A stretch of DNA of 63,648 bases, filler included, from Octopus bimaculoides (Eukaryota), in NCBI RefSeq assembly GCF_001194135.2. It is 7 parts of 7 records of this genome, joined end to end, with 100 filler letters (N's around TTAATTAATTAA, not from the genome) between each part and the next. Parts side by side here need not be neighbours in the genome. Positions count along the whole stretch, not along the records: positions 23,454 to 37,463 come from NC_068993.1; 6 more parts are not named here. The stretch is one strand, 5' to 3'. Each line of letters starts with the position of its first letter. The first letter of the stretch is position 1. Both the position numbers and the translations under genes were made by a program. Shown one piece after another: positions 23,454 to 41,700 of this stretch. Below the pieces are notes generated by a model. It was given only the letters and a program-made list of their open reading frames with translations. It was not told the origin of the DNA and did no database searches.

Positions 23454-23511
<58 letters not shown>

Positions 23512-24251
23512 AATAGAAGAACACAAATAGGATTTAAAATCTACTACAACTGTTTCAGTAGTATTATAATGACGTATTCATAGATTACATCCTCAGGTGA
23601 AATTTGAAACATGTATAAACATGCAAGGTATAATCTAGATGACCTATTGAACAACAATAGGTCATCTAGGTTTGGCCTTTTTATACCTGTTTTAAATTTT
23701 ACCAGAGGATGGTGGATTTATCCCAAGATGTAGTGTATGAATGCGCCATTAAGAGGCCACTGATAGAGCTGTAGTAAACTTTAAACCCCATTTCTGTTCT
23801 TTTATATCAACGCCACGCTTGGAACCAACGATGGCTCGGATCTACGTTTTATATTGCATGTTGTACCTATATATAACCTATATAAAATATCCCTGCAGTA
23901 TACTACCTACTAATGATCCCTAATAATTTTTTTTGGCTAATGTTTTGATGCATGTACATTCTAATGTATTCCGTAATTAATCTATCTATCTACCTACCTG
24001 TTTGTATGTCTGTCTGTGTGTTTGTGTCTGTCTGTTTGTCTTACTGTCTATCTCCGTATCTCTGGATGTCTGTTTGCATATCTGTCGGTCTATGTATGTA
24101 TGTATGTATATATGTATGTATGTATGTAAGTATGTATGTATGTATGTATGTATGTATGTATGTATATATATATGTGTGTGTATGTATGTATGTTTGTGTG
24201 AATGTGATAGTGCGATATATAGTTATTGATGTGTGTTTTTCTGTTTCGCAG

Positions 24252-25069
24252 GAAAAGCAGACCCAAAATATACACTGGAAATTGATCTGCAGAAGTTAAT
24301 TGAGGATTTAGTTTGGAAAAAGTTTATGAAAAGTCTTCGTTTTTCGTTTCTTGGATGTTTCTATCGCCGAAATGACTATCATATCGAAATTAGGTGGAGT
24401 TACTTTAGCTTCAAGGATGTTTTTCAATTGGAAAAGGCCCCGCAAGAAGAGCCAATAGAATCCCAGACTCATTACTCAACCATATATACGTGCCAGAGAG
24501 CCGGACCGCAGAATCATACATTCAATGCACAGGGTTCGCAAACTGAGTCTCAGTTGATAAGTTTACAAAAGAATTACAGTATTGGAGGAAAAGTATCGTT
24601 AAATGTAGCAGGATTAGAATTCAATGTCGGCAGCGAACACCAAAGTGGCAGTGAAAGCCAGATAGAAACGACCACCTCATGGTCGGATAGCACCGAGTTT
24701 ACTTTGAATGCAAACGATTCCGCTAAAGTAGTTATTACAAATAGAAAGGAAAAATCAAACGAAAATTTTACAGTGAAAACTGTGTTACGATTGAGACCGA
24801 CACACCCTGGATGGGGAGCTCCTGTGATTGTTAGAAAGAAATCTAACCGTAAGAAAGTGTTCCAACATGAAATTATCTCATTCAAAGAGCTGTTTGAAGC
24901 GTACAGTGAATGTAAAGACTTGGTGGAGATTCGACCGCATGCTCACTTACAACAATTCGAAGGCGGCAAGAGTCAATATTATGATGAAGCTTATATATTT
25001 TCCAGAGGAATATTGACAAGTCAAGAGGAAAAACGGACTGTTGACGTAGCTTCCAGAGACAAAGAATAA
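24252..25069 (+). CDS. Aerolysin-like ETX/MTX2-family beta-pore-forming protein, paralog 1 (terminal exon; first exon not found)
   Basis: Open 272-codon exon after the acceptor TTTCGCAG| (phase 1). Pre-stem YSTIYTCQ..QNHTFNAQGSQTES, amphipathic hairpin NYSIGGKVSLNVAGLEFNVGSE, TTTSWSDSTEFTL..SAKVVI..NFTVKTVL and terminal FSRGIL, as in molluscan ETX/MTX2 proteins. Family call is by motif recognition, not search. Confidence 0.75.
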
Positions 25070-25648
25070 TTATAAAGTGATCATTATTTCACAATTGATT
25101 ATTTTATCCACTAACAACTCACGATTAATAATAAATTGGCATCGCATCCCTAACACCATCAAAAATCTACAGCGTTTCAACTCTACACTCGTGACCTCGG
25201 CCTACATCGATTCGTGTTTCAATGAANNNNNNNNNNNNNNNNNNNNNNNNNNNNNNNNNNNNNNNNNNNNNNNNNNNNNNNNNNNNNNNNNNNNNNNNNN
25301 NNNNNNNNNNNNNNNNNNNNNNNNNNNNNNNNNNNNNNNNNNNNNNNNNNNNNNNNNNNNNNNNNNNNNNNNNNNNNNNNNNNNNNNNNNNNNNNNNNNN
25401 NNNNNNNNNNNNNNNNNNNNNNNNNNNNNNNNNNNNNNNNNNNNNNNNNNNNNNNNNNNNNNNNNNNNNNNNNNNNNNNNNNNNNNNNNNNNNNNNNNNN
25501 NNNNNNNNNNNNNNNNNNNNNNNNNNNNNNNNNNNNNNNNNNNNNNNNNNNNNNNNNNNNNNNNNNNNNNNNNNNNNNNNNNNNNNNNNNNNNNNNNNNN
25601 NNNNNNNNNNNNNNNNNNNNNNNNNNNNNNNNNNNNNNNNNNNNNNNN

Positions 25649-25945
25649 TTCTTATTTCTGATATTAAATTTTTCTAATTTCTAACATTAAATTTGTCTTA
25701 TTTCTAACTTTAATTTTTCTTATTTCTAACATTAAATTTTTCTTATTTCTGATATTAAATTTTTCTAATTTCTAACATTAAATTTGTCTTATTTCTAACT
25801 TTAATTTTTCTTATTTCTAACATCAAATTTTTCTTATTTCTGATATTAAATTTTTCTAATTTCTAACATTAAATTTGTCTTATTTCTAACTTTAATTTTT
25901 CTTATTTCTAACATTAAATTTGTCTTATTTCTAACCTTAATTTTT
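25649..25945. repeat. Minisatellite, 91-bp higher-order unit of four ~22-bp subunits
   Basis: TCTTATTTCTGAT recurs at 25650, 25741 and 25832; subunit approximately TCTTATTTCTAACATTAAATTT. Confidence 0.85.
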
Positions 25946-27289
25946 TTTTTTTCTAACTTCAATTTTTTCCTATTCTAATTTTTTTAAATAATGCATGATG
26001 AATAAAACAAGGCAACTACTACTTTTCCTTTGTTTCCCTAAATTTTAAACCTTTTTTCACCATTTCTTGCGAAGACCAGCATTAGTTTTTGTTTTTGTTA
26101 TTTGATCTCCATTGTACTACAAAGTCAAAACGATTAAAGATCGTTGTTTTCTCACCCTCACTTTCATCTTCTCTCTTCTCTACACACGCAAGTATGCATA
26201 TATGCAGGGTAATTCAAATTGAATGGTGCAAAATTACACATAATTGATTGGGTTATGTGGCAAAAGCACGGGTGTAGCCGTCTGCCATGTGGCCGAGGGT
26301 CCCACTTTGATCAACTTTAACTTAATAAAACACGGAGAGCTAATATTTCATATTGCATCTTTATTTTTGCAATATACGAATATAGATTAAAACCATTGCC
26401 GTTATGTTTTCCTTTTGTACCATTCAGTTTCAGTTACCCCGTATATATATGTATGTATGTATATGTGTATGTATGTATGTATGTATTATGTATGTGTGTG
26501 TTTGTATATGTATACATATATATGTTTATGCATATATATGTATGTATGTATATATANNNNNNNNNNNNNNNNNNNNNNNNNNNNNNNNNNNNNNNNNNNN
26601 NNNNNNNNNNNNNNNNNNNNNNNNNNNNNNNNNNNNNNNNNNNNNNNNNNNNNNNNNNNNNNNNNNNNNNNNNNNNNNNNNNNNNNNNNNNNNNNNNNNN
26701 NNNNNNNNNNNNNNNNNNNNNNNNNNNNNNNNNNNNNNNNNNNNNNNNNNNNNNNNNNNNNNNNNNCATATATATATATGAAAACTCAAGATAGGAAAGT
26801 AATACTCCTATAGAAAGCCCTAGAGGAAAATTGTCTATTTCCATAGGAGTTCTATCAATATCCCAACTGTCATGAGGAACTTGGTCACAACCAACAGCAG
26901 CAGAATTTCTAATCTATTGGAGAACATAGAAAGCTTCATCTAGGATGCACTCCCATTGTAACGAAGCACTAACAAAAGGTTACTTTTTTGATAAGTTAAG
27001 AATATAAGATCTCCTACTCAAATCCAAATCCAAATCCAAAGACAAATAGAAAAGCAAGGCAATCTGGTATTCACTATTCAGTCTGAATATTTCCACTAGC
27101 ATAGCTAGGAGTTTCCTATCGCTAATCAGGTACTATTCTCCAAAAACCTACAAATATTGTGAACTCTTTAATTCTCATAATGTTAAATGTAGCTACTCAT
27201 GTTTTGATAAGAATTGCTTCCAATATTCCATGCCACAATGGAAGCAAAACGTGCACGTACACAGATTGTATCCCACTTCCCGGCATATA

Positions 27290-27480
27290 ACAGTCAAAAT
27301 CCTGCCAACACATCTCTAATAGGATTGTGTTTTTCAAAGATTGTTGTCTATAAAACCACCTTCACACTAACTGATAACATCTCGAGACACTATATAAACA
27401 TAACAGCCAATGATTTCAAGGGACGATTTATGCCACATATGCATTCTTTCAGATTTGGGGATATGAAAGAACCATCACTT
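27290..27480 (+). mobile_element. Penelope-like GIY-YIG endonuclease remnant
   Basis: CFSKIVVYKTTFT...RHYINITANDFKGRFMPHMHSFR resembles PLE VVYKATV...YIGLT..FKTRYNNHKSSF. Confidence 0.6.
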
Positions 27481-28789
27481 TCTTGCCCTGCTTCATCTGG
27501 AGACTCCAGGAAAAAGGAAACGACTATCCCAACAACACACGGAGTATTTTTTTGACAAGGCTTCCCCTTACTCGCCTACAATCTGTATTTGGTCGAGTCT
27601 GCTTTCGTAAGAAACTGCATATACTGTCAAAGAAAAAGAGCCGCCTGTCTCATTAATCTCACTAAAAATACACTCGTCAAGTCATTGGCCACTGAGAATC
27701 CAGAAATACCAATGTAACCCTAGCTAGCCCACGAACAAGTACATAGTGTATAATCTCCGTCTGCGCACATGGGATTATTACCTCTACAGTGTGCTAGCGT
27801 TCAGATTAATTTGTCAAATGTAATGTTTACCTGTTCACACCAATTTTGATTTATTCAGGTTCAAATGGGGTGTCAACAATATTTGCTTGTAACTTTGTTA
27901 ATTTTCTACATACAGAATTGAAATTTTGTAAATGGGTGCTTATATGCCNNNNNNNNNNNNNNNNNNNNNNNNNNNNNNNNNNNNNNNNNNNNNNNNNNNN
28001 NNNNNNNNNNNNNNNNNNNNNNNNNNNNNNNNNNNNNNNNNNNNNNNNNNNNNNNNNNNNNNNNNNNNNNNNNNNNNNNNNNNNNNNNNNNNNNNNNNNN
28101 NNNNNNNNNNNNNNNNNNNNNNNNNNNNNNNNNNNNNNNNNNNNNNNNNNNNNNNNNNNNNNNNNNNNNNNNNNNNNNNNNNNNNNNNNNNNNNNNNNNN
28201 NNNNNNNNNNNNNNNNNNNNNNNNNNNNNNNNNNNNNNNNNNNNNNNNNNNNNNNNNNNNNNNNNNNNNNNNNNNNNNNNNNNNNNNNNNNNNNNNNNNN
28301 NNNNNNNNNNNNNNNNNNNNNNNNNNNNNNNNNNNNNNNNNNNNNNNNNNNNNNNNNNNNNNNNNNNNNNNNNNNNNNNNNNNNNNNNNNNNNNNNNNNN
28401 NNNNNNNNNNNNNNNNNNNNNNNNNNNNNNNNNNNNNNNNNNNNNNNNNNNNNNNNNNNNNNNNNNNNNNNNNNNNNNNNNNNNNNNNNNNNNNNNNNNN
28501 NNNNNNNNNNNNNNNNNNNNNNNNNNNNNNNNNNNNNNNNNNNNNNNNNNNNNNNNNNNNNNNNNNNNNNNNNNNNNNNNNNNNNNNNNNNNNNNNNNNN
28601 NNNNNNNNNNNNNNNNNNNNNNNNNNNNNNNNNNNNNNNNNNNNNNNNNNNNNNNNNNNNNNNNNNNNNNNNNNNNNNNNNNNNNNNNNNNNNNNNNNNN
28701 NNNNNNNNNATTTTAAATGGTCATAGTCCTTTGGTGGTGGAGGTAGTCCTTTGTGGCTTTTTACATATACAATATATGAATTAACTATA

Positions 28790-30310
28790 ATTAAATTAAC
28801 TAAAAGCTACAAAATGTACCGCTATCATTTCTTCCCAGGTTGACCAACTGGGTAATATATACGATATTGGTCACATTTATCAACCCCATCCATATATTTG
28901 TTATAACAAATATTCACTAGGGGTTTCCCCTCAGCACCAGCATCAGGTTGTTCATTAGTAAACAGAAATAAAATCTGTCTTTTGTCTTTGAAAGCAGTAG
29001 CTAATAAATTTTCCTTTTGCATTTGTAAAATGTCCCCTTTTTTAAAAAAAATGTTTTTATTTCACGGGGTAAACCTTTACGGTTGCCCATAACAGTACTG
29101 TGTAAGTACTTACATGGGCAAGATTTTCTACCAAAGCCATTGAAGAAAAAAAAAAAGGTCAAAATAGAGGTGTTGGTGCTGGTGGTGAAATGATTCAGTA
29201 AGAGACCATATTACATCCTGTCCCAATCCATATGGTCTTTTTCGATTATATTTTTTTACCTATGTAAACATCGAAGTTTACACAATATCCAGTGTCTGAT
29301 TCACAAACTTCCCGTACCTTGATCCCCCATTTAGTGAGTTTGGCAGGCATGTACCGCCGAAAATGTACTCTGCCCTTATAGCATATCATGGCTTCATCTA
29401 CACTGAGATTTTTACCAGGTAGATACAAAGTTTTATAACTGTTAAGGAGTAAATCAATTACAGGACGTACTTTGTACAGGGGTTCGTAGTTTGGGTCGTT
29501 TTTGCTGGGGGCATTAACAGAATAAATTAAATGTAAATACTGAGATATGTTCGAATACCTCGTCTCTTCGACATTATACTTGAGATATACGGATCACCAT
29601 ACCTTATATCAAGACTCCAATAGTTCCACAGTCGAGAAAACTGTTTAACACCAAACATAATATTGATTGTGAAAACGTTCTCATTTCCGCAGTATAAGTT
29701 GGCTGCTATAGTGGATTGATTTTTCCGCGAATAGAAATTACACGTTGCGCATATTTGTTTCTTTCCTCCGTAACATTTTCAAAAAACTTTCCGGTAAAAA
29801 CAAAAATTGATAGTCCAATGGTTGAATATCAGGAGGTAAACTGTGCTGTGGACCAGTATTTTCTGAGAAATCAGAAATAGTGATTGGTATTGTAATCTTT
29901 GACCATGTTGCCATGTTTACGATATCATTTTCATCACTTTCATTTTTAGCACGTTCGTTCTCAAAATCTTCCTCGTCCGACGAATACTCACTAATATCGA
30001 TATCAGAGTCGTCGGCAGACAAAAAACTCTTGCTTTCATTTATATTTTCTATATCGTCAAGAGTAAAACTAAGGTACCTACTTCTCTTCAAACGTTGAAA
30101 CAACCACATGGTCTAAACAATTTCACAGTATTTATACTTGGATAAAGGCGGGAAAAGCTTCATTTCGCATTATCTCAAAGCTACGAGTATTCAATAACAT
30201 GATTTGTTTATTTTTTTAGCGATTTCGTAGAGCAGTCGGATACGGCCGGATTTGGCCGGTTTGAACAAATAAAGGGGGAAATAATTTTGGCCGGTTTGAA
30301 CACTAAAGGG
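28790..30310 (-). mobile_element. piggyBac (PGBD4-like) transposon, decayed and internally deleted
   Basis: NLSVDEAMICYKGRVHFRRYMPAKLTKWGIKV..CESDTGYC.NFDVYIG, YNKYMDGVDKCDQY and an acidic N-terminus; TIR CCCTTTAGTGTTCAAACCGGCC at 30310. The other end is probably in the gap. Confidence 0.9.
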
Positions 30311-30399
30311 TTATATTCACATCGCTGGCTATATTCGCATCACTCAGCCTTGCTTGGAATGCAATCTTATATGTAACTTGACCATCACAACCTGCCATT

Positions 30400-30700
30400 G
30401 ACATTGCCGAAAGATCAAATCTACAATGAGCTAATTACCTGACATCAACATCCTATCTTCTCTATAACGTGAATTCGACCATGAAAGAATCATTTTGTCA
30501 CCTGATTGCAATGTGCAATTTGGTCGTTTCCCTTTTATCCCAGTGTCTGAAGCTCAAGGTGTGATTATTGAACCTGGCCTTGAAATTCCCCTCTGTAAGG
30601 CCCACATATTTCTTTGTCGAAACTGTGCCCTTGGTCCCCACCTCCAAGATCACAGATAGAACTTGCTTTTTATATTGTGTCCATGTACAAGCTTTTTATC
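30400..30700 (-). mobile_element. Penelope-like GIY-YIG remnant
   Basis: KKYVGLTEG-FKARFNNHTLSFRH.DKRETTKLH on the minus strand. Confidence 0.6.
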
Positions 30701-32055
30701 TCTCTATACTTTTTATATATATTTCTTATATATTTTTTACAAATTTAAGAGAGAGATTTGACGCTAATATCCATTATTATTGTAATAATGGATATTAGCG
30801 TCAAGTCTCTCTCTTAAATTTAAATTTAAAAGTTTGGATATATAAACAAGGAGAATGATCCCTAAGGAGTCTNNNNNNNNNNNNNNNNNNNNNNNNNNNN
30901 NNNNNNNNNNNNNNNNNNNNNNNNNNNNNNNNNNNNNNNNNNNNNNNNNNNNNNNNNNNNNNNNNNNNNNNNNNNNNNNNNNNNNNNNNNNNNNNNNNNN
31001 NNNNNNNNNNNNNNNNNNNNNNNNNNNNNNNNNNNNNNNNNNNNNNNNNNNNNNNNNNNNNNNNNNNNNNNNNNNNNNNNNNNNNNNNNNNNNNNNNNNN
31101 GTGTGTGTGTGTGTGTGTGCATATATGGCTACAGGACATCACAAAACGTAAACAACATGAAATCCGAAATACAAAAAAACAACATGAAGACAAATGAGAT
31201 CCGAAAATCTCTCCCACTCTCAGGAGCAACATCTGGCGCCTTGCTTTACGCCATTGATTGAAGGCTTATCACCGCTACCTGCTGCTTTCCGTGTTGTAGG
31301 CGAAGCTGGATTGTCCTCTCCAGGTGGATGGTGCGGATGTGTTGATGAGTAATACGTAGTGGTGGTCGAATACCAGCCTAGGTGGTGTGTTGTAGGAGAC
31401 AGTATGATGCCTATGCAGTATGATGCCTCTCTTCACAACACTGCTGGGTTCAAAGGAACAGTAGGACTGTCACAGTTTGGCAGTAGCCATGTTACAGTGG
31501 CTGCCAGGACGAAGTTGTAATCAACGACGAACTGCCTTATGGGCTCTAACTCCGGATTTTCCATCGAGAGTTACGCTTGAAGCCTTCCCATGACTGGGTA
31601 TTACTGCAAGGCAGCAGAGATTTGGAGTCAGAGTTTTCCTTCTCTTAGATGGACTGGCTACCAAGGTCGACAACCTCTGTCTGTCCTTATGTAGCAGGTA
31701 GCATTGAGTTACTTGGTAGCCAGTAGCAGGAAAAAATCAGGGAAACCAGAAAAATCAGTCCTGACTGTAATATAGATATGTACATGCTATTGGATGGTCG
31801 TTGACTCACAACAGTTTCTCCCTTCATTGACAGGTTTTTTGCTTTTTACCCTGCAGGATGTCCAAGCAAGCTTGGTGAAGTTGCTGGTGTAGTCTCCGGC
31901 GACCCGAGCTTTAAGAGACTAAGAGGAGGTTGAAAAAGTAGTTGACCGGACAAAAAAAAAAGCGTATCGTTTAAGACAACTTCAAAACAAGGGACATGAC
32001 TTTGGTTTGTGCTTTCACATCGCTTGTGGATATTCTCTCACCTTTTTAGCCTTTT

Positions 32056-32098
32056 AGTCCTTTCTGTTGAAAGGCGTAGGCTCGAAACGTAAAAGACT
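32056..32098 (+). ncRNA. Degenerate minimal type-I hammerhead ribozyme motif
   Basis: AGTCCTTT-CTGTTGA-AAGGC GTAG GCTC-GAAA-CG-TA/AAAGACT. One core substitution (A6U) and an imperfect stem II. Confidence 0.5.
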
Positions 32099-32460
32099 TT
32101 TCCATTCTCCCCAAGTGTTAAACTAATACACCTGCTTGTTGCTCTTGCACCTGTCTTCATCTTTTGTTTTCTGTAAATTTGAACTATATATATATATATA
32201 AACTGTTATGTTATTTTATATTTAAAAACAAAATGATTCAAAAACCCGTTTACAAACTCTTTGCTATGAATGACCAATTTTAAATACTACTGGAACTTAC
32301 TCACAAGGTACAGGAATCTTACATGTATACCATTCTGCCTAAATAATGGATCTACAGATGCAATATCCCTACATAACTCACATCTATTTTCATTCCTCCA
32401 CTTCACTCTCTATTTCATATCTCATCTAGAATAACTATTGCTTAACCATTTTCTCACACC

Positions 32461-32508
32461 GTCTCCGATGAAGGGATATATAAAATATCTTGAAAACAGC
32501 TGTAAGAC
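32461..32508 (+). ncRNA. Minimal type-I hammerhead ribozyme motif in a Penelope-like pLTR remnant
   Basis: GTCT-CCGATGA-AGGGATA tataaaa TATCTT-GAAA(A)-CAGCTG-TA/AGAC, with palindromic stem III and a GUA triplet. Confidence 0.6.
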
Positions 32509-33427
32509 CTTCTATTTATAAATGTTCTGAAATCTTTCACAGCCTTGGATTTTTATCTCATTCTGTTAATTTATATATATATATATATATATATGGGGCG
32601 GGGTGAATAAGAAGAAAATTAAGCGAAAATGCACAGTGGAAATCAAAAAAAATAAACGCTTTTTATGAAAAGTAACGATAGATGTATACAATTAGATGAA
32701 CTGAGGTAGGAATAAAAATAATAAAAGTCATTATTGTGAATTGTTAAAGAGATTCAAAAGCATACCGGTTTCGTAAAGTTTTTAATCATTGCTTTGAATG
32801 CACACCAATTATTGAACGGTGTCAGGTCTACTAGTCCCCGAGTAAAAAGATTATGTGAAAGGGAGGTAAGTAGTTCTGGATTTGGTGCAATTAGGGTAGA
32901 TATAGATCTGTAATGTGAATGGTGTATGGGATGTATGGAGGTTAGTTGTATTAATTGAAAGGTTAGTAGTGTTCTGTATTGTGTTATGTGTTCATATTTA
33001 GTTGTGGAAGATATTTATTGATCAAAGTTGTCTCTTTATTCATTCTTTGTTGTGCTGAGGTGTTCTGTGAACATTGATAGAAGGGAAAATTAGGAAATTA
33101 GGATTAAGATTCCTAGCACACCTTTCTATGTGTCCACTGACCTATATCTGTCTGTATTGTGGGTGGTGGATTTGTGGGTGGTGGATTTGTGGGTGGCGGA
33201 TATGTTATATATATGTTTTTTTATCTGGGTGGGTATATATTCTTTTACTTGTTTCAGTCATTTGCCTACAGCCATACTAGAGCACCGCTTTTAGTCGGGC
33301 AAATCAACCCCAACCTTATTCTTTGTAAGCCTGGTACTTTTTCTATCGGTCTCTTTTGCTGAGCCGCTACGTTACAGGGACGTAAACACACCAGCATCGG
33401 TTGTCAAGCGATGTTGGGGTGGGGGGA

Positions 33428-33462
<35 letters not shown>

Positions 33463-33628
33463 CGATGGGCTTCTTTCAGTTTCCGTCTACCAAATCCAAT
33501 CACAAGGCTTTGGTCGGCCCGAGGATATAATAGATGACACTTGAACAAGTTGCCACGCAGTGGGATTGAACCCAGAACCACGTGGTTGGTAAATAAGCTA
33601 CTTACCACACAGCCACTTCTGCACCTAT

Positions 33629-33717
33629 AAAAAATATGGAAAGCTTCACGAATTTGCGAGTCATCCTTGCGCATGCGCCATGCTAATCTTCTCTGTATCA
33701 CTCCAATTTTAGAATAT
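33629..33717 (-). pseudogene. U6: U6 snRNA retropseudogene, lacking the 5' stem-loop
   Basis: Minus strand ATATTCTAAAATTGGAGTGATACAGAGAAGATTAGCATGGCGCATGCGCAAGGATGACTCGCAAATTCGTGAAGCTTTCCATATTTTT matches U6 nt ~21-107 with ~7 substitutions. Confidence 0.92.
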
Positions 33718-34605
33718 CTATCACTCCACCTGGTGTGTATATATTTTGGCTACTTTTTTTTATAATATTGTACATTTATGTAGGGGTTTGTATGTTTGTG
33801 TTTGTGTATATATGTGTGCGTGTTTGCATGCATGTATGAAAGCGCTTGTGTGTGTATCTTATATGTACATGTATTATACTTGTGAATGTGAGTTTGCATA
33901 TTTCAGGTGTGTCACATATGCTCATACATAAACACACACACAAACACACAAACACACACGCCACACGCACACACTCACACTTACACGCGCGCGCGCGCAT
34001 ATATATACATAAGCAATTCGGAAAGGGATAGAAAATCGATTGTCAGAATGAGCATGGAGGCTTGTCATAGGATTATTTAGAATTAGCGAAGTGCATGGAG
34101 GTCGAGTAGTATTTATGCTTACATGAATAAATAACGTCAAAGAATCTATTTAACAGCGAAGAGTTGTGGAGACGAAGAATAGTGACTCTTTTATACATAA
34201 TTCACATTTATCTATATTTATATTGTAGGGGGAGGGATCTTCAGCTGCTATAGACCATGACAGGGCGCATTGGGTATCTTATGATTTGTGGTTATGCATG
34301 TGTGTTGCTAAAGAGGTAAATAGTTTAGATTTTGGATTAGTGAAAGAATTCCTATGAGCACGATAACGGAGTTCAAAAAGCAGTGTCGCCGATATACACC
34401 CTGCAGCGGCCGTAGGGCTTATAAAACTCTACCTGTTTTATTTGTGATATCGTTTTTTACTGGGTGTCGAATTATGTATTCTTAATATCCACACACATTT
34501 ATAGTTTTCTTTTCGATTAAATGTATTTTTTATATGAAAATAGACGTATCTAGCTTGCTAGTCGTTGCTTTACCTATATATATATGTGTGTGTGTGTGTG
34601 TGTTG

Positions 34606-34695
<90 letters not shown>

Positions 34696-34731
34696 TATAG
34701 TTATTGATATTTGTTCTTCTCTGTTTTTCAG

Positions 34732-35549
34732 GTAAAGCAAACCCAAAATATGCAGTGGAAATCGATGTGCTGAAGTTAATTGAAGATTTCGTTTGGAAAA
34801 AGTTTCTGAAAAATCTTCGTTTTTCGTGTCTTAGAAGATGTTTCTATCGACGAAATGACTATCATATTGATATTCGGTGGAGTTACTTTAGTTTCGAGGA
34901 TTATCTTGAATCTGAAGTGCCCCTGCGAGTAGAGCCAACAAAATCCCAGATTCAATACTCAACCACATATACGTGCCAGATAACCGGACCGCAGAAACAT
35001 ATATTCAACGCACACGGTTCGCAAATGGAGTCTAAGTTGGTAAAATTACAAAAGAATTACAGTATTGGAGGAAAGGTATCGATAAAGACAGCAGGATTAG
35101 AGGTCAATGCGAAACGTGATAGTAGCCATGAAGAAAAGACAGATACGACCACCTCATGGTCGGATACCGCCGAGTTTTCTTTGAATACAAACAACTCGGC
35201 TAAAGTGGTTATTACACAACAAAAGGGAACATCAGAGAAGTACTTTGTAGTGAAAACTGTGTTACGATTGAGACCGACACGCCCTGGATGGGGAGCTCCT
35301 GTGATTGTTAGAAAGAAATCTAACCATCAGACAGTGTTTGAATATGAAATTGTTAGTTTCAGAGAGCTGTTTGAAGCGTATAGTGAATGTAAAGACTTGG
35401 TGGAGATTCGACCGCATGCTCACTTACAACAATTCGAAGGCGGCAAGAGTCAATATTATGATGAGGTCTATATATTTTCCAGAGGAATATTGACAAGTGA
35501 AGAGGAAAATCGGACTGTTAGCATAGCTCCCCCTGAGGGAGAGGAGTGA
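34732..35549 (+). CDS. Aerolysin-like ETX/MTX2-family protein, paralog 2 (terminal exon)
   Basis: Acceptor TTTTTCAG| phase 1 with the same upstream GATATAGTTATTGAT; 272 codons; ~191/274 identical positions to paralog 1 (hand count). Confidence 0.75.
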
Positions 35550-36899
35550 AGTTCATTGTTATATCCCCTAACTCTGTAACTCAATCCTCATTTCCTGCAC
35601 TTAATATACCTTATATACTGTATCCGATGCAATCTATCCATCCGTCTATATGTGGGTCAGACGGTCCGTCGGCTGGCCAACCGTTTCAGAGAACACCTAT
35701 GGATTGTCCGCCTGCGGAGAAATACTCNNNNNNNNNNNNNNNNNNNNNNNNNNNNNNNNNNNNNNNNNNNNNNNNNNNNNNNNNNNNNNNNNNNNNNNNN
35801 NNNNNNNNNNNNNNNNNNNNNNNNNNNNNNNNNNNNNNNNNNNNNNNNNNNNNNNNNNNNNNNNNNNNNNNNNNNNNNNNNNNNNNNNNNNNNNNNNNNN
35901 NNNNNNNNNNNNNNNNNNNNNNNNNNNNNNNNNNNNNNNNNNNNNNNNNNNNNNNNNNNNNNNNNNNNNNNNNNNNNNNNNNNNNNNNNNNNNNNNNNNN
36001 NNNNNNNNNNNNNNNNNNNNNNNNNNNNNNNNNNNNNNNNNNNNNNNNNNNNNNNNNNNNNNNNNNNNNNNNNNNNNNNNNNNNNNNNNNNNNNNNNNNN
36101 NNNNNNNNNNNNNNNNNNNNNNNNNNNNNNNNNNNNNNNNNNNNNNNNNNNNNNNNNNNNNNNNNNNNNNNNNNNNNNNNNNNNNNNNNNNNNNNNNNNN
36201 NNNNNNNNNNNNNNNNNNNNNNNNNNNNNNNNNNNNNNNNNNNNNNNNNNNNNNNNNNNNNNNNNNNNNNNNNNNNNNNNNNNNNNNNNNNNNNNNNNNN
36301 NNNNNNNNNNNNNNNNNNNNNNNNNNNNNNNNNNNNNNNNNNNNNNNNNNNNNNNNNNNNNNNNNNNNNNNNNNNNNNNNNNNNNNNNNNNNNNNNNNNN
36401 NNNNNNNNNNNNNNNNNNNNNNNNNNNNNNNNNNNNNNNNNNNNNNNNNNNNNNNNNNNNNNNNNNNNNNNNNNNNNNNNNNNNNNNNNNNNNNNNNNNN
36501 NNNNNNNNNNNNNNNNNNNNNNNNNNNNNNNNNNNTAAAAAATTGTAGTCTGTTCTCTTTGCCATTCTTGCTACAATAGCGACAACATGAATTTCTTCCA
36601 TCCTCTTGCTCTGTTAAAATATTTAAGAAAAATTATATTAACGTATCTTGTCTGTTCAAGTTTCATATGTGTACAGCTGAAGGTAGCGCAGTATCTAAAT
36701 TGATGTAATGATTGCATTTTTCAATTAAATGGAACCGCTTGAAACGGTCGTACTGTATTATTACTTGATATCCTATTGCTTATTTTGATTTTATTCACCT
36801 TACTTTTAGCTGTGCGGCTAATACCGAACTGACTTGGTGCTTCAACCTAAGTACCTAATTCAATTGAATCTTAATTGCTTCTTATATATATAGATATAT

Positions 36900-36963
<64 letters not shown>

Positions 36964-38119
36964 GTGTGTGTGTGTGCGTGACGTTCTCTCTCCCTCTTTC
37001 GTTTTCTCTCTCATCCTTTCTCTAATTCTTTTTTCTCCCCTTCACTGTTTTCTATCTGTCTTCCTTTCTCCTTTATTCTCTCTCGTTCCTCACACGTGAC
37101 CATCGTCCATCTTTCTTTTCTTCACATGATTATCTTTCTTTTCCTTCAGTGCTGTCGCACAGACTGCACATGTTCCTATCTGTTTCCTCTTCTATCTATT
37201 CTCTTGTTAAAGACAATATTTCTCCAGCGTTCGCTACTTTACCTCGTCTAGTCTAACGACACTCCATGTTTGTTTTCGTTCGGTTTCCTTGTATGTCTCC
37301 ACTGTCCTGTTTTTGTTACCAACTTTGACCCTCCGCAAAATCCTAAATTTATATTTGCTTTGTTTTTGTGGGGGCAACTACCTTCGAAGTCTCATACTGT
37401 CGTTCAATGCTCGAAATGAGGAGTAGATATATATGCATATATATTATTATATGTGTATATATANNNNNNNNNNNNNNNNNNNNNNNNNNNNNNNNNNNNN
37501 NNNNNNNTTAATTAATTAANNNNNNNNNNNNNNNNNNNNNNNNNNNNNNNNNNNNNNNNNNNNTATGAATGAAAAAATTAGGAAAGAAAAAATTATTAAG
37601 AATAAAAGGTTAAACTTTATATATATATACAAAGTTTTGATTTTAAAAAAACTTTAACGATATTATAAACTATAAAGATTAATAATTAATCAAATAATAT
37701 TAATCAAAAATAATCGAAAATATATCAACACTATTCCAATCGAAGTTCTAATATTATGTTGAAATGAAACTATAACTTCTAAATAATTTAGTGTTAAATA
37801 AGTTATCTATTAAAATAATCTATAAAGAACCAAATGAATAGTATAAAAACAAGAATACATATTATTTTCAAATAGTAGAAAATCTTTCGCAAAGTGAAAA
37901 CAGTACTTATCCAAATTTTTCCGTATTTTTCCTAGACTGTGAAGGAGGTACTTTTGCTAGATAAGTTCCTCACTGATAGAGTATTGCAGGGTACTGCTAT
38001 GGAGTGGTATGGTATGGTGTAGTGATAGTAGTGGTTCAGTACTTATTGTTAATTCTTTTATATGCTTCAGCCCAAAGGCTGTGGCCATGCTGGAACATTG
38101 CCAGTGTAATCACCTTTTC

Positions 38120-38732: not shown

Positions 38733-41700
38733 CAGTAGTAGCAGCAGCAACAACAGCAGTAGTAGGAGAAATGAGAAATTGAGTAATGAGTGTAAACAAC
38801 TGTTAAAACATCTCTTTTCTGAGATGTTGTACAATCATGCACTGTAGAGTGGTTACCTATGATTGAGCTATAGTAGTGGTGGTGGTGATGATGGTGGTGG
38901 GGGGGGGTATTTATTGGTGGGTATTTGTGATGAATGGTGGTATATTTTATCATTCATGTGCAGTGCACTAGCATTATTCATTCATCAAAACATGTTAGCT
39001 TCGTATATTTCTAGCTTTTATTAGCTTTATGTTAGCTTTATATATTTCTAGCTTTTGCAAGTAGCCATGCATTCAAATCTTCATATAGGTGCAGGCATAG
39101 CTGTGTGGTAAGAAGCTTGCTTCCCAACCACATGGTTCCGGTTTCAGTCCCACTTGGGCAAGTGTCTTCTATTATAGCCTTAGGCCAACCAAAGCCTTTT
39201 CGAGCATATACATACACGATGAGCAGAAGCTCATCGTGTATGTATATGCTTATGTGTCTGTGTTTGTCCCCCCACCATCACTTGACAACCGATGTTGGTG
39301 TGTTTATATCCCTGTAACTTAGCAGTTCAGCCAAAGAGACCAATAGAATGAGTACTAGGCTTACAAAGAATAAGTCCTGGAGTTGATTTGTTTGAGTAAA
39401 GGCAGCACTCCAGCATGGCTGCAGTCAAATGGCTGAAACAAGTAAAAGAGTAAAAGAATAAAAAGAATCTCACTGCCATGCGGCAGCATCATGCTTCATA
39501 GACAGACAACATAGAGTCTCCTCTTTACTCTGATACTCTGAAAGATAAATTCTATGTTATAAGCAGTTTCTTCGAACCCATTATTATTCTGGTTTCTATG
39601 CTTCCAGAGTACCCACCCCTGCATTGTTACACACACACACACACACACACACATATGCACATATATATGATGGGCTGCTGAAAAGTTCCTGGCCTTAAGG
39701 GTATCCCAAAAGGGCTGGCTGGAGGCCCAACCTTCCAAGTTCTTTTTCATGGCTTAGGAAAACTGACCATTTGAGTCTTATAAGTTGCCTATACAGCTAA
39801 GTGCTTTATTGGTGTGAAACCAATGGTCACTCTCTGACCAAGTAGTATGTGTGTGTGTGTGTGTTTGATCAAGTTGAGGCTGTGGGTTGCCCAAAGTGTT
39901 ATACAGTAAAATTGAAGCATCTCTTAGTGAAGTGAATTTCTTGACCATACATCCATCCACACCTCTGTGCATTTCCCCTTTGTTTTTATTTTAGGTTTCT
40001 TTGTGATTGCATCTGGGACTACATAATCCAATGTGTCCTTTGTTTATAAGGAGGAATATGTTAAATAAGGAAGGTTTTGCGGCTGTTCCTTACATGTTGT
40101 ATGACCACTTAGTGATGCCCTTGTTGGGCAATTATTGCCTTTCATCGTTAGTGACTCCAAAAGAATGGAAAACAAAGTTGATCCTAGCAGAATTCAAGGT
40201 TAATCCCAAGGCTAATTTCATTTTCTATTTTTTGGTGTCAATAAAGTACTAGTCAAGCAGTCGAGTACTAAAGTCAGTATAATCAACCGGGCCTTGTGAA
40301 ACAATTATTATATCTGCAGTAAGGGTGGCCTTGTATTTAAATCACTAGCCTTCTACCCAAATTAGGCATTATTACTGTAGTTACAATAAAGTTAATGGAT
40401 TTGCCAAGATTTGTTATCCTTGTCCCAACTCTTTACATTCTGATTTCAAATACTTCCAAAGTGTTCCTTGCTTTTCATTTTTCTACATCAACAAACTAAA
40501 ATACCAGTATAAGTGCTGAGGCTTTTGTTTTGATTTTTAACTTTTTACTTACATAATATGGTCTCTACGTTTGAGACCTGTATGTAAGAAATCATTATTG
40601 CAGATGCAGTAGTTGTGGCATTTTGCCAAAGATAGAATTTTAAAATTTGCTTCAAAGAGATTCTTGTCAATAACATTTGGTAAGATTTTCCACCACTTCC
40701 ATTAAATACTATCTCCCAGGATAAACAACAGCTTCATTTGTTTCTTATATTCTCCTATCAGAATATAAAGTAAACATTACCTATGAGAATTGCCACTATC
40801 TCAACAAATGCAAACATGGTTATGTAGTCAATAAGTTTGCTTTTTGCAATTTCATGGTTTTAGATTCAAACTTATTGTGTAGCATCTTGAGTAGGTGCTT
40901 TCTACTGTAGCCTTGAGCCAACCAAAATATTGTGGTTGAAATTTAGTTGATGGGACATTGTTTACAATCCTACTGAAATGATTGTTTCTGTTTTTGGTGA
41001 TTAGTCTTAATTCATCATCAATCCACACCTCTGCTCTTGTTTATTACTCATTAATTTCACCACTGCTTTCATCTTTAACTATCTAATACCTTCCCTTCAT
41101 GCTCTTAAAAGTACCCTTCAGCCCTGATCTACTGCTTGTATCATCTTTTGTTTCTTCAGAGATTTGGTGTTACACCCCATCATTACTATCTTACCTTTTA
41201 CCAGATATTCCTGCCTACCATTATATAAATGCAAGGTAGTTGCGTATCTTCTCTATACCTAGCCACCTCTGCTTGGCCATGGCATAAAATCACCTCGTCA
41301 CCTTCTCAAATACCCCACCACCACCGCACTTAATCAAGAGGGCTTTCCTTTTCTCTCTCTTTTTTTTTTTTTCTTGCTCTATTCTTTCTTGCAAGTAACT
41401 TGGAAACCTCACTAGTGCTGGTAGCATGAAAAAAGCACCCAGTACACACTATAAAGTGGCTGGATGGCAATAAGAAGGGTATACAGCCATTAAAACCATG
41501 CCATGGAGCATGATGCAGCCTTGTGACTCATTGGATCTTGTCATACCATACAACCTCCAACCCTTGCCAGCATGGATAAGAGACGTTAAATGATGGTGGT
41601 GGTAAGGGTGATGATGATTAAGGCCACTACTTGGTCCTTGAATAATTTTAGTGGAATCCACTCTGTTGTAGGCATTCAGGCCAAGTTTCTTATCTAAGGA

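Follow-up and report, generated by a model that had tools for sequence, protein, structure and literature searches.

Candidate alternative terminal exons of a divergent, leaderless, putative aerolysin-fold pore former in Octopus bimaculoides

We propose that two long exons of Octopus bimaculoides, here called exons A and B, are alternative 3′-terminal coding exons of one octopod gene that encodes a leaderless pore former of the aerolysin fold, a reading to which we assign a probability of roughly 0.6. Both exons lie in a single segment (record NC_068993.1, positions 23454-37463, hereafter the piece) of the window, by which we mean the whole stretch of 63,648 nucleotides, joined from seven parts of assembly GCF_001194135.2, along which all positions are counted. 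By sequence, the gene appears to be the orthologue of Octopus sinensis LOC115218515. In the proposed model, a mini-exon carrying the start codon would be spliced either to exon A or to exon B, and each splice product would be a leaderless protein of ~275 residues with a single-lobe beta-pore-forming fold comprising an N-terminal helical head, long twisted strands and a short amphipathic hairpin (~residues 113-131). The monomer would bind a target membrane via its head, and monomers would then oligomerise while the hairpin and its flanking strands refold into a beta-barrel. The two exon variants would differ mostly in the head, linker and hairpin, with the C-terminal third kept alike by gene conversion, and turnover of sequence in frames that stay open is what might be expected of a diversifying defence or attack effector.

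Exon anatomy and gene structure

A reading-frame scan of the + strand of the piece returned two long open frames, which are listed here with the features discussed below.

24224-24251, + strand: 3′ splice region of exon A, with TATTGAT at 24224-24230, a polypyrimidine tract and AG at 24250-24251
24252-25069, + strand: exon A, terminal coding exon, phase 1, split Gly codon, 271 codons and TAA
24275-24412, + strand: N-terminal head of exon A, predicted helices and an IRWSYFSF strand, with the family-conserved motif
24584-24667, + strand: putative amphipathic insertion hairpin of exon A (GGKVSLNVAGLEFNV) and polar return segment
24890-24988, + strand: candidate gene-conversion tract in exon A, 99 nt with 2 differences from copy B
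25130-25135, + strand: AATAAA, candidate poly(A) signal 61 nt past the exon A stop, recognised as a motif only
34702-34731, + strand: 3′ splice region of exon B, with TATTGAT at 34702-34708, a polypyrimidine tract and AG at 34730-34731
34732-35549, + strand: exon B, terminal coding exon, phase 1, 271 codons and TGA
34755-34895, + strand: N-terminal head segment of exon B
35067-35144, + strand: putative insertion hairpin of exon B (GGKVSIKTAGLEVNA), then the charged KRDSSHEEKTD
35367-35465, + strand: candidate gene-conversion tract in exon B, pairing with 24890-24988
25227-25648, 26557-26766, 27949-28709, 30873-31100 and 35728-36535: assembly gaps, all outside the exons

Each exon measures 818 nt, made up of 2 bases that finish a split Gly codon, 271 codons and a stop, and their starts are 10,480 nt apart. 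Re-reading of boundaries, frames and phase upheld the original prediction of two intact exons ~10.5 kb apart, on the same strand and in the same phase, within one segment. The left boundaries, ...tgtttttctgtttcgcAG/GA AAA GCA for exon A and ...ttcttctctgtttttcAG/GT AAA GCA for exon B (slashes here and below mark junctions), are directly preceded by a polypyrimidine tract and AG, and TATTGAT, a perfect match to the branch-point-like motif YNYURAY, lies 22-24 nt 5′ of each AG within a 14-nt block that is identical in the two copies. Acceptor, polypyrimidine tract and branch motif are also kept in O. vulgaris. Homology between the copies extends, microsatellites aside, from ~30 nt 5′ of the acceptor to the stop codon, and the encoded proteins are 69% identical (E 4e-140). 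No third copy of the exon was found by tblastn in the piece, and none is present in the O. vulgaris locus. Because all five assembly gaps lie outside the exons, neither frame depends on a gap, while those between the exons make the 10.5 kb spacing and the inter-exon content estimates only; the region downstream of exon B also runs into a gap. A chance origin of the frames is excluded by the intact orthologous exons in O. sinensis, O. vulgaris and Argonauta hians. As a separate observation, a long microsatellite ends ~40-50 nt before each acceptor, (TATG)n at 24091-24205 for exon A and (TG)55 at 34585-34694 for exon B, and O. vulgaris has the same microsatellite-before-acceptor arrangement.

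The orthologous O. vulgaris locus (OX597826.1, 61 kb; L001) is gap-free across the relevant 30 kb and contains one exon encoding the start Met-Lys-Ser (MKS). This exon, at L001 32327-32372, ends in ATG AAG AGT G with the donor G/GTATGT, so that its coding part amounts to 10 nt, Met-Lys-Ser and the first base of the Gly codon. An intact A-like exon lies 6.8 kb 3′ of it (L001 ~39163-39977) and an intact, annotated B-like exon 17.7 kb 3′ of it (L001 50120-50938), and there is no second MKS exon in the 61 kb, hence none between the A-like and B-like exons. Exon A is orthologous to O. sinensis isoform X4 and to the O. vulgaris A-like exon, and exon B to O. sinensis isoform X1 and to the annotated O. 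vulgaris protein CAI9732175.1; X1 and X4 both begin MKS-G. The single MKS exon of O. vulgaris, together with the start shared by the two O. sinensis isoforms, argues for one gene with alternative last exons in place of the tandem pair of genes originally predicted, and on this comparison we infer alternative splicing in O. bimaculoides. No credible start exon was found in the 0.8 kb 5′ of exon A or in the readable DNA between exons A and B, neither by scanning for the DNA pattern, nor with the O. vulgaris peptide as tblastn query, nor among ATG...G/GT candidates; from the spacing in O. vulgaris it would be expected ~6.8 kb 5′ of exon A, which is outside the piece.

If exons A and B instead belonged to two separate tandem genes, each with its own promoter and first exon, the single-gene models of O. 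sinensis would be annotation merges, and we regard this as unlikely. Automated annotation can fuse tandem paralogues, the predicted O. sinensis isoforms X2 and X3, which are chimeras of A and B, could be mapping artefacts between paralogous exons, 1.6 kb between exons A and B is unread in the window, and the O. vulgaris annotation joins its upstream exons to the B-like exon only and places the A-like exon in no called product. These points have to be set against the gap-free interval between the O. vulgaris exons, which lacks a second MKS exon just as the readable part of the window does, and against the identical MKS-G start of the A-like and B-like O. sinensis products. Moreover, homology between A and B starts only ~30 nt 5′ of the acceptor, with no visible sign that a first exon was included in the duplication. 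The chimeric isoforms themselves (X2, P0037; X3, P0035) begin with A-like sequence and switch at the homologous point to the B-like exon. Placed by eye on O. vulgaris DNA, the X2 junction (...CCCA/GC... to ...ATAG/CT...) requires a GC or GT donor, and that donor is absent from exon A of the window. The chimeras could reflect real read-through splicing or a paralogous-exon artefact, and the X2 junction no more than hints at transcripts extending from A into B.

Family membership and predicted fold

That the octopus proteins are very divergent members of the aerolysin/ETX-MTX2 superfamily holds by way of intermediate sequences and a predicted structure. A Pfam scan of exons A and B returned no family at E ≤ 10, the gathering score of ETX_MTX2 (PF03318; 22 bits) not being reached, the Argonauta orthologue had no Pfam match either, and a profile of six octopod sequences found nothing in the PDB. 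Searched singly against the PDB with phmmer, exon B matched the Saf pilus only, at E 0.007 or worse, and these hits were set aside as compositional matches between beta-strands. The ETX/MTX2 identity originally claimed for both proteins stands at the level of the fold superfamily, through relatives and structure, and is without the direct profile match.

A word-indexed search retrieved only isoforms X1 and X4 of O. sinensis LOC115218515, and repeating it with a 31-sequence alignment retrieved 3 proteins and added nothing. Against 1.8 billion representative proteins, phmmer with exon B found 29 proteins, among them a full-length Argonauta hians orthologue of 46% identity. The other matches (E 7e-13 to 1e-3; E 7e-13 to 3e-10 for molluscan proteins P0004 to P0008) include Dreissena (LOC127858638), Haliotis (LOC124270036), Batillaria, Babylonia (LOC143275587), the chiton Liolophura and the cuttlefish Sepia pharaonis (CAE1314076.1), and all of the matched relatives are named "uncharacterized". 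Through these relatives the superfamily comes within reach of sequence profiles. PF03318 was matched by 17 of the 31 aligned family sequences (best E 5.9e-11), and four of the ten scanned individually (P0005, P0007, P0010 and P0011) passed its cut-off of 22 bits with 25-32 bits. The octopod profile aligned with the non-octopod family profile over 237 columns (hhalign probability 99.9%, E 1e-32), and the latter matched Cry51Aa1 (9.8e-9) and Dln1 (1.3e-6) in the PDB, as well as Sarol-1 and LSL. The aerolysin family PF01117 was matched by one of the 31 members, at E 0.0028. Our literature search yielded nothing on LOC115218515 or on ETX/MTX2 in combination with cephalopods, and in broader form it returned unrelated papers only.

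With the 31-sequence alignment, AlphaFold2 gave a model with a predicted local distance difference test score (pLDDT) of 87.1 and a predicted template modelling score (pTM) of 0.75, in which four long twisted strands, each of 18-27 residues, span residues 88-112, 134-151, 156-180 and 240-266. Foldseek against the PDB placed Cry23Aa1 (4rhz) first (2.4e-12), and Cry51Aa1/2 gave template modelling (TM) scores of 0.50-0.55, 0.55 being the best; 2d42, parasporin-2, epsilon toxin, aerolysin, Mpp75Aa1, LSL, lamprey immune protein and Dln1 followed, and all 39 matches at E ≤ 1e-3 were aerolysin-family proteins. Epsilon toxin and parasporin, which the original prediction had named for structural comparison, are thus among the matches to the predicted fold, which is of the aerolysin type. 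The aerolysin matches cover the large lobe only (target-normalised TM 0.15-0.22), and just ~60 residues of the ~275-residue protein precede the core. Pfam detected no lectin domain, and the Dln1 match is confined to its C-terminal pore module, residues 189-288.

Two features once put forward as unusual turned out to be shared with the family. The N-terminal RFSxLxxCFYRRNDY is the octopod form of a head motif, W..F...R.F.RR....D..W.YF.F, that is conserved across the whole molluscan family and falls in the helical head of the model. In the model, the supposed long C-terminal insertion folds with high confidence into a beta-hairpin (strands 224-234 and 240-266), one that relatives also possess, the octopod version being only ~4-5 residues longer.

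The orthologues start with MKSGK... in O. sinensis and MTRWCFLRKHTSLDSMKSGK... in O. vulgaris, in neither case with a hydrophobic core. No signal peptide was found in any octopod orthologue or in any of the 26 non-octopod relatives, the window's own start exon lying outside the piece, which argues against classical secretion. About half of the non-octopod members (P0008-P0029) begin with acylation-like Cys clusters (MGCC, MLCGC, MACCL, MFGCCL or MSCFGC). Six long relatives, one of them close to a Sepia pharaonis protein, have T-S-V, T-T-V or T-K-L as their last three residues, similar to PDZ-binding termini. A lipid-anchored cytosolic aerolysin-like family would be unusual.

Sequence turnover and pore competence

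Relative to O. vulgaris, the ratio of nonsynonymous to synonymous rates (dN/dS) is 0.90 for exon A and 0.95 for exon B; between paralogues it falls within 0.90-0.96 for the A/B pair of the window and reaches 1.13 for the O. vulgaris pair. The coding p-distance from O. vulgaris is 0.116 (A) and 0.074 (B), compared with 0.082 over 6,096 aligned non-coding sites, and differences are evenly spread over the three codon positions (33/28/33 in A, 16/24/20 in B). The frames are nevertheless protected. Non-coding DNA has accumulated 57 indels (9.4 per kb), 47 of which (82%) are not multiples of 3, a rate from which ~6 frameshifting indels per exon would be expected; none is observed, and all gaps in the aligned coding regions are multiples of 3. 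Given the observed number of random substitutions, the probability that no stop arises is 0.010 for A and 0.038 for B. The absence of stops and frameshifts despite a near-neutral rate indicates that selection keeps the protein while its sequence turns over, and the pattern suggests diversifying selection on A and B.

Twenty-eight sites group A with X4 and B with X1, making the duplication older than the divergence from O. sinensis. Within residues 221-239, four sites cluster by species instead, and together with the 99 nt in which the copies have 2 differences they point to gene conversion in the C-terminal third. The highest dN between A and B, 0.33, falls in codons 121-150, that is, in the hairpin and its return segment.

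These rates raise the question of whether the locus is decaying or non-functional, its exons being neutral and open by luck or through recent origin. With the near-neutral dN/dS in both orthologues and paralogues go the even spread over codon positions, an exon divergence no lower than that of introns and the lack of annotation of the A-like exon in O. vulgaris. Yet three Octopus species keep both frames open and the one homologue recovered from Argonauta is full length, the acceptor, polypyrimidine tract and branch motif of the splice region have been conserved, and PGWG.PVIVR.KSN and similar blocks do not vary even in Argonauta, where overall identity is 46%. A pseudogene was rejected on the frame-retention and indel statistics given above, and we consider decay of the locus very improbable. 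The insertion hairpin aligns with the hairpin region of Cry51, and the Ser/Thr tract TTTSWSD is present. Its arms alternate in polarity, V-S-L-N-V / L-E-F-N-V in A and V-S-I-K-T / L-E-V-N-A in B, and the alternation is kept in Argonauta (V-K-L-Q-C / L-N-L-K-L). Between Tyr110 and Trp143, however, octopods have 34-36 residues as against 38-49 in other molluscs; most relatives have a hairpin longer by 7-13 residues, and the Cry51 region, at ~52 residues by hand count on the alignment, is ~20 longer. The alternating amphipathic hairpin of the original prediction is present in a short form, with a charged stretch following on its return arm.

A protein that retained the aerolysin fold and lost pore formation, serving as a soluble cytosolic binding or scaffolding protein whose hairpin no longer inserts, is the alternative we take most seriously, though we still find it doubtful. 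It would account for the shortened hairpin and the charged stretch that follows, for the leaderless N-terminus of every orthologue and, in many relatives, for Cys clusters at the N-terminus (MGCC, MLCGC) and T-x-V at the C-terminus, which suggest a place at the cytosolic face of a membrane; 2d42, which carries the PDB title of a non-toxic crystal protein, is also among the best structural matches. On the other side, apolar/polar alternation persists on both arms, Argonauta included. The long flanking strands could also extend a barrel as they do in other family members, such as the aerolysin and lysenin pores, and near-neutral amino-acid turnover suits an arms-race effector better than a housekeeping scaffold. 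Pore competence is thus plausible, not assured. Mutually exclusive 3′ exons, each encoding a complete aerolysin-fold protein, might also yield two fast-diversifying leaderless variants that act inside the cell and not as secreted toxins, for instance as a gasdermin-like executioner of cell death or membrane remodelling, with the molluscan family forming a cytosolic, lipid-anchored aerolysin-like class. We think this improbable, more so than separate tandem genes; if true, the wider molluscan family, with its MGCC or MxCxC starts and T-x-V ends, would be an unrecognised protein class.

Several points weigh against the model of a single gene for a leaderless pore former with alternative last exons. 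The octopod proteins themselves have no direct Pfam or PDB sequence match, and AlphaFold2 needed the family alignment to give a usable model, its pLDDT being 30 from four octopus sequences alone. A secreted toxin that has no signal peptide needs non-classical release. By themselves, a dN/dS near 1 and an even spread over codon positions would fit relaxed constraint as well. The short hairpin, followed in B by KRDSSHEEKTD, may mean that membrane insertion is weakened or lost. Finally, the start exon is outside the piece and 1.6 kb between the exons is unread, so that exon B may have a private start exon.

With these reservations, we favor the single-gene model. Since nearly the whole protein is contained in one exon that was duplicated within the gene, the choice of splice site, and not of promoter, would select the variant. 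Protected frames, amino-acid change at or above the neutral rate and homogenisation of the C-terminal third by gene conversion form a pattern typical of arms races between host and pathogen or predator and prey, and on this ground the proteins are reasonable candidates for a part in the immune or toxin biology of cephalopods. They also represent an octopod branch that domain databases have missed and that is annotated only as "uncharacterized", and their hairpin offers a natural test of the minimal length at which an aerolysin-family hairpin still forms a pore.

Neighboring elements and comparison with known systems

The DNA between the exons holds several further elements.

28825-30109, - strand: decayed piggyBac-type transposase, in open reading frame (ORF) pieces 29738-30109, 29246-29428 and 28825-29022
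33630-33736, - strand: copy matching U6 spliceosomal RNA over its full length (83.5 bits, E 2e-20)
33200-33629: repeated tRNA-like short interspersed nuclear element (SINE) adjoining the U6 copy
25649-25978: AT-rich minisatellite, 23-nt unit, ~14.6 copies, higher-order periods of 45, 68 and 91 nt
30498-30653, - strand: short ORF that weakly resembles a GIY-YIG nuclease (E 0.0067, short of the Pfam cut-off)

The middle piggyBac piece (29246-29428) matches DDE_Tnp_1_7 at E 8e-12, and the relic, which runs into the gap at 27949-28709, is common to O. vulgaris at ~88% identity, marking it as an old insertion. The U6 copy has a diverged 5′ stem-loop, an intact ACAGAGA box and a terminal T run, with an A/T-rich, TATA-like stretch ~25-35 nt 5′ of it. 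The SINE next to it has many copies in the O. vulgaris locus, where the ~1 kb U6-SINE block seems absent from the orthologous position; instead of a functional U6 gene, the U6 copy might represent a chimeric U6-SINE retrocopy. The minisatellite starts right after the first assembly gap, 3′ of exon A, and the short ORF could be what is left of a Penelope-like element.

Molluscs are already known to possess pore formers of the aerolysin type, biomphalysin and the glabralysins being examples. The closest structural likeness of the octopus model is to the bacterial ETX/MTX2 group, which provides the best Foldseek matches (E 2.4e-12 to 2.8e-7, TM 0.35-0.55, identity 9-13%). The Bacillus thuringiensis crystal proteins Cry23Aa1 (4rhz), Cry51Aa1 (4pkm/5hd2), 2d42 and parasporin-2 (2ztb) and the epsilon toxin of Clostridium perfringens (1uyj, 3zjx) share with it a single-lobe, elongated beta-sheet architecture of ~250-300 residues, an N-terminal head and a hairpin between two long strands; Cry51Aa1 is in addition the best sequence-profile match of the wider molluscan family. 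Unlike these bacterial toxins, the octopus gene is carried by an animal, contains introns and has neither a secretion signal nor crystal packaging.

A second group, comprising zebrafish Dln1/natterin-like protein (4zno), lamprey immune protein (5zu4), Bombina BmALP1 (6lh8) and Laetiporus LSL (1w3a), shares the aerolysin-type pore module, and each member matches either the octopus model or the molluscan family profile. Several of these proteins likewise have no classical signal peptide. In them the pore module is combined with a lectin or beta-gamma-crystallin domain, whereas the octopus proteins have an ETX-type head only. They lack the N-terminal lectin-like small lobe of the two-lobed aerolysin/biomphalysin type (PF01117), just as they lack the jacalin-like or DM9 lectin fusion of the natterin-like/Dln1 type.

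Among molluscan proteins, the three-domain glabralysins of the snail Biomphalaria glabrata, proposed to serve as immune effectors, are single-lobe proteins of ETX/MTX2 type whose head varies; they were modelled on Cry23 and Cry45, and the paper that describes them links them to Cry51 as well (Lassalle et al. 2020, PMC7016736). Their ETX/MTX2 domain is recognisable, and their coding sequence is distributed over 4-5 exons on separate scaffolds (PMC7016736). In the octopus proteins, by contrast, the domain lies below detection, the coding sequence would consist of a 10-nt mini-exon and an 818-nt exon, and two such exons would alternate in one gene; this distinction is drawn from the published description of the glabralysins. 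The molluscan relatives found here share with the octopods the head motif, the core and the leaderless N-terminus, but have a longer hairpin, and in many of them Cys clusters at the N-terminus go with a long C-terminal tail, which in some finishes in T-x-V; the octopod clade has lost the longer hairpin, the Cys clusters and the tails. Because a Cephalopoda cluster of ETX/MTX2 proteins already appears in a published tree (PMC7016736), this kind of protein is known in cephalopods. What is new is the extreme divergence of the octopod members, their leaderless, short-hairpin form, the probable alternative terminal exons with gene conversion between them, and a near-neutral rate of change in protected frames.

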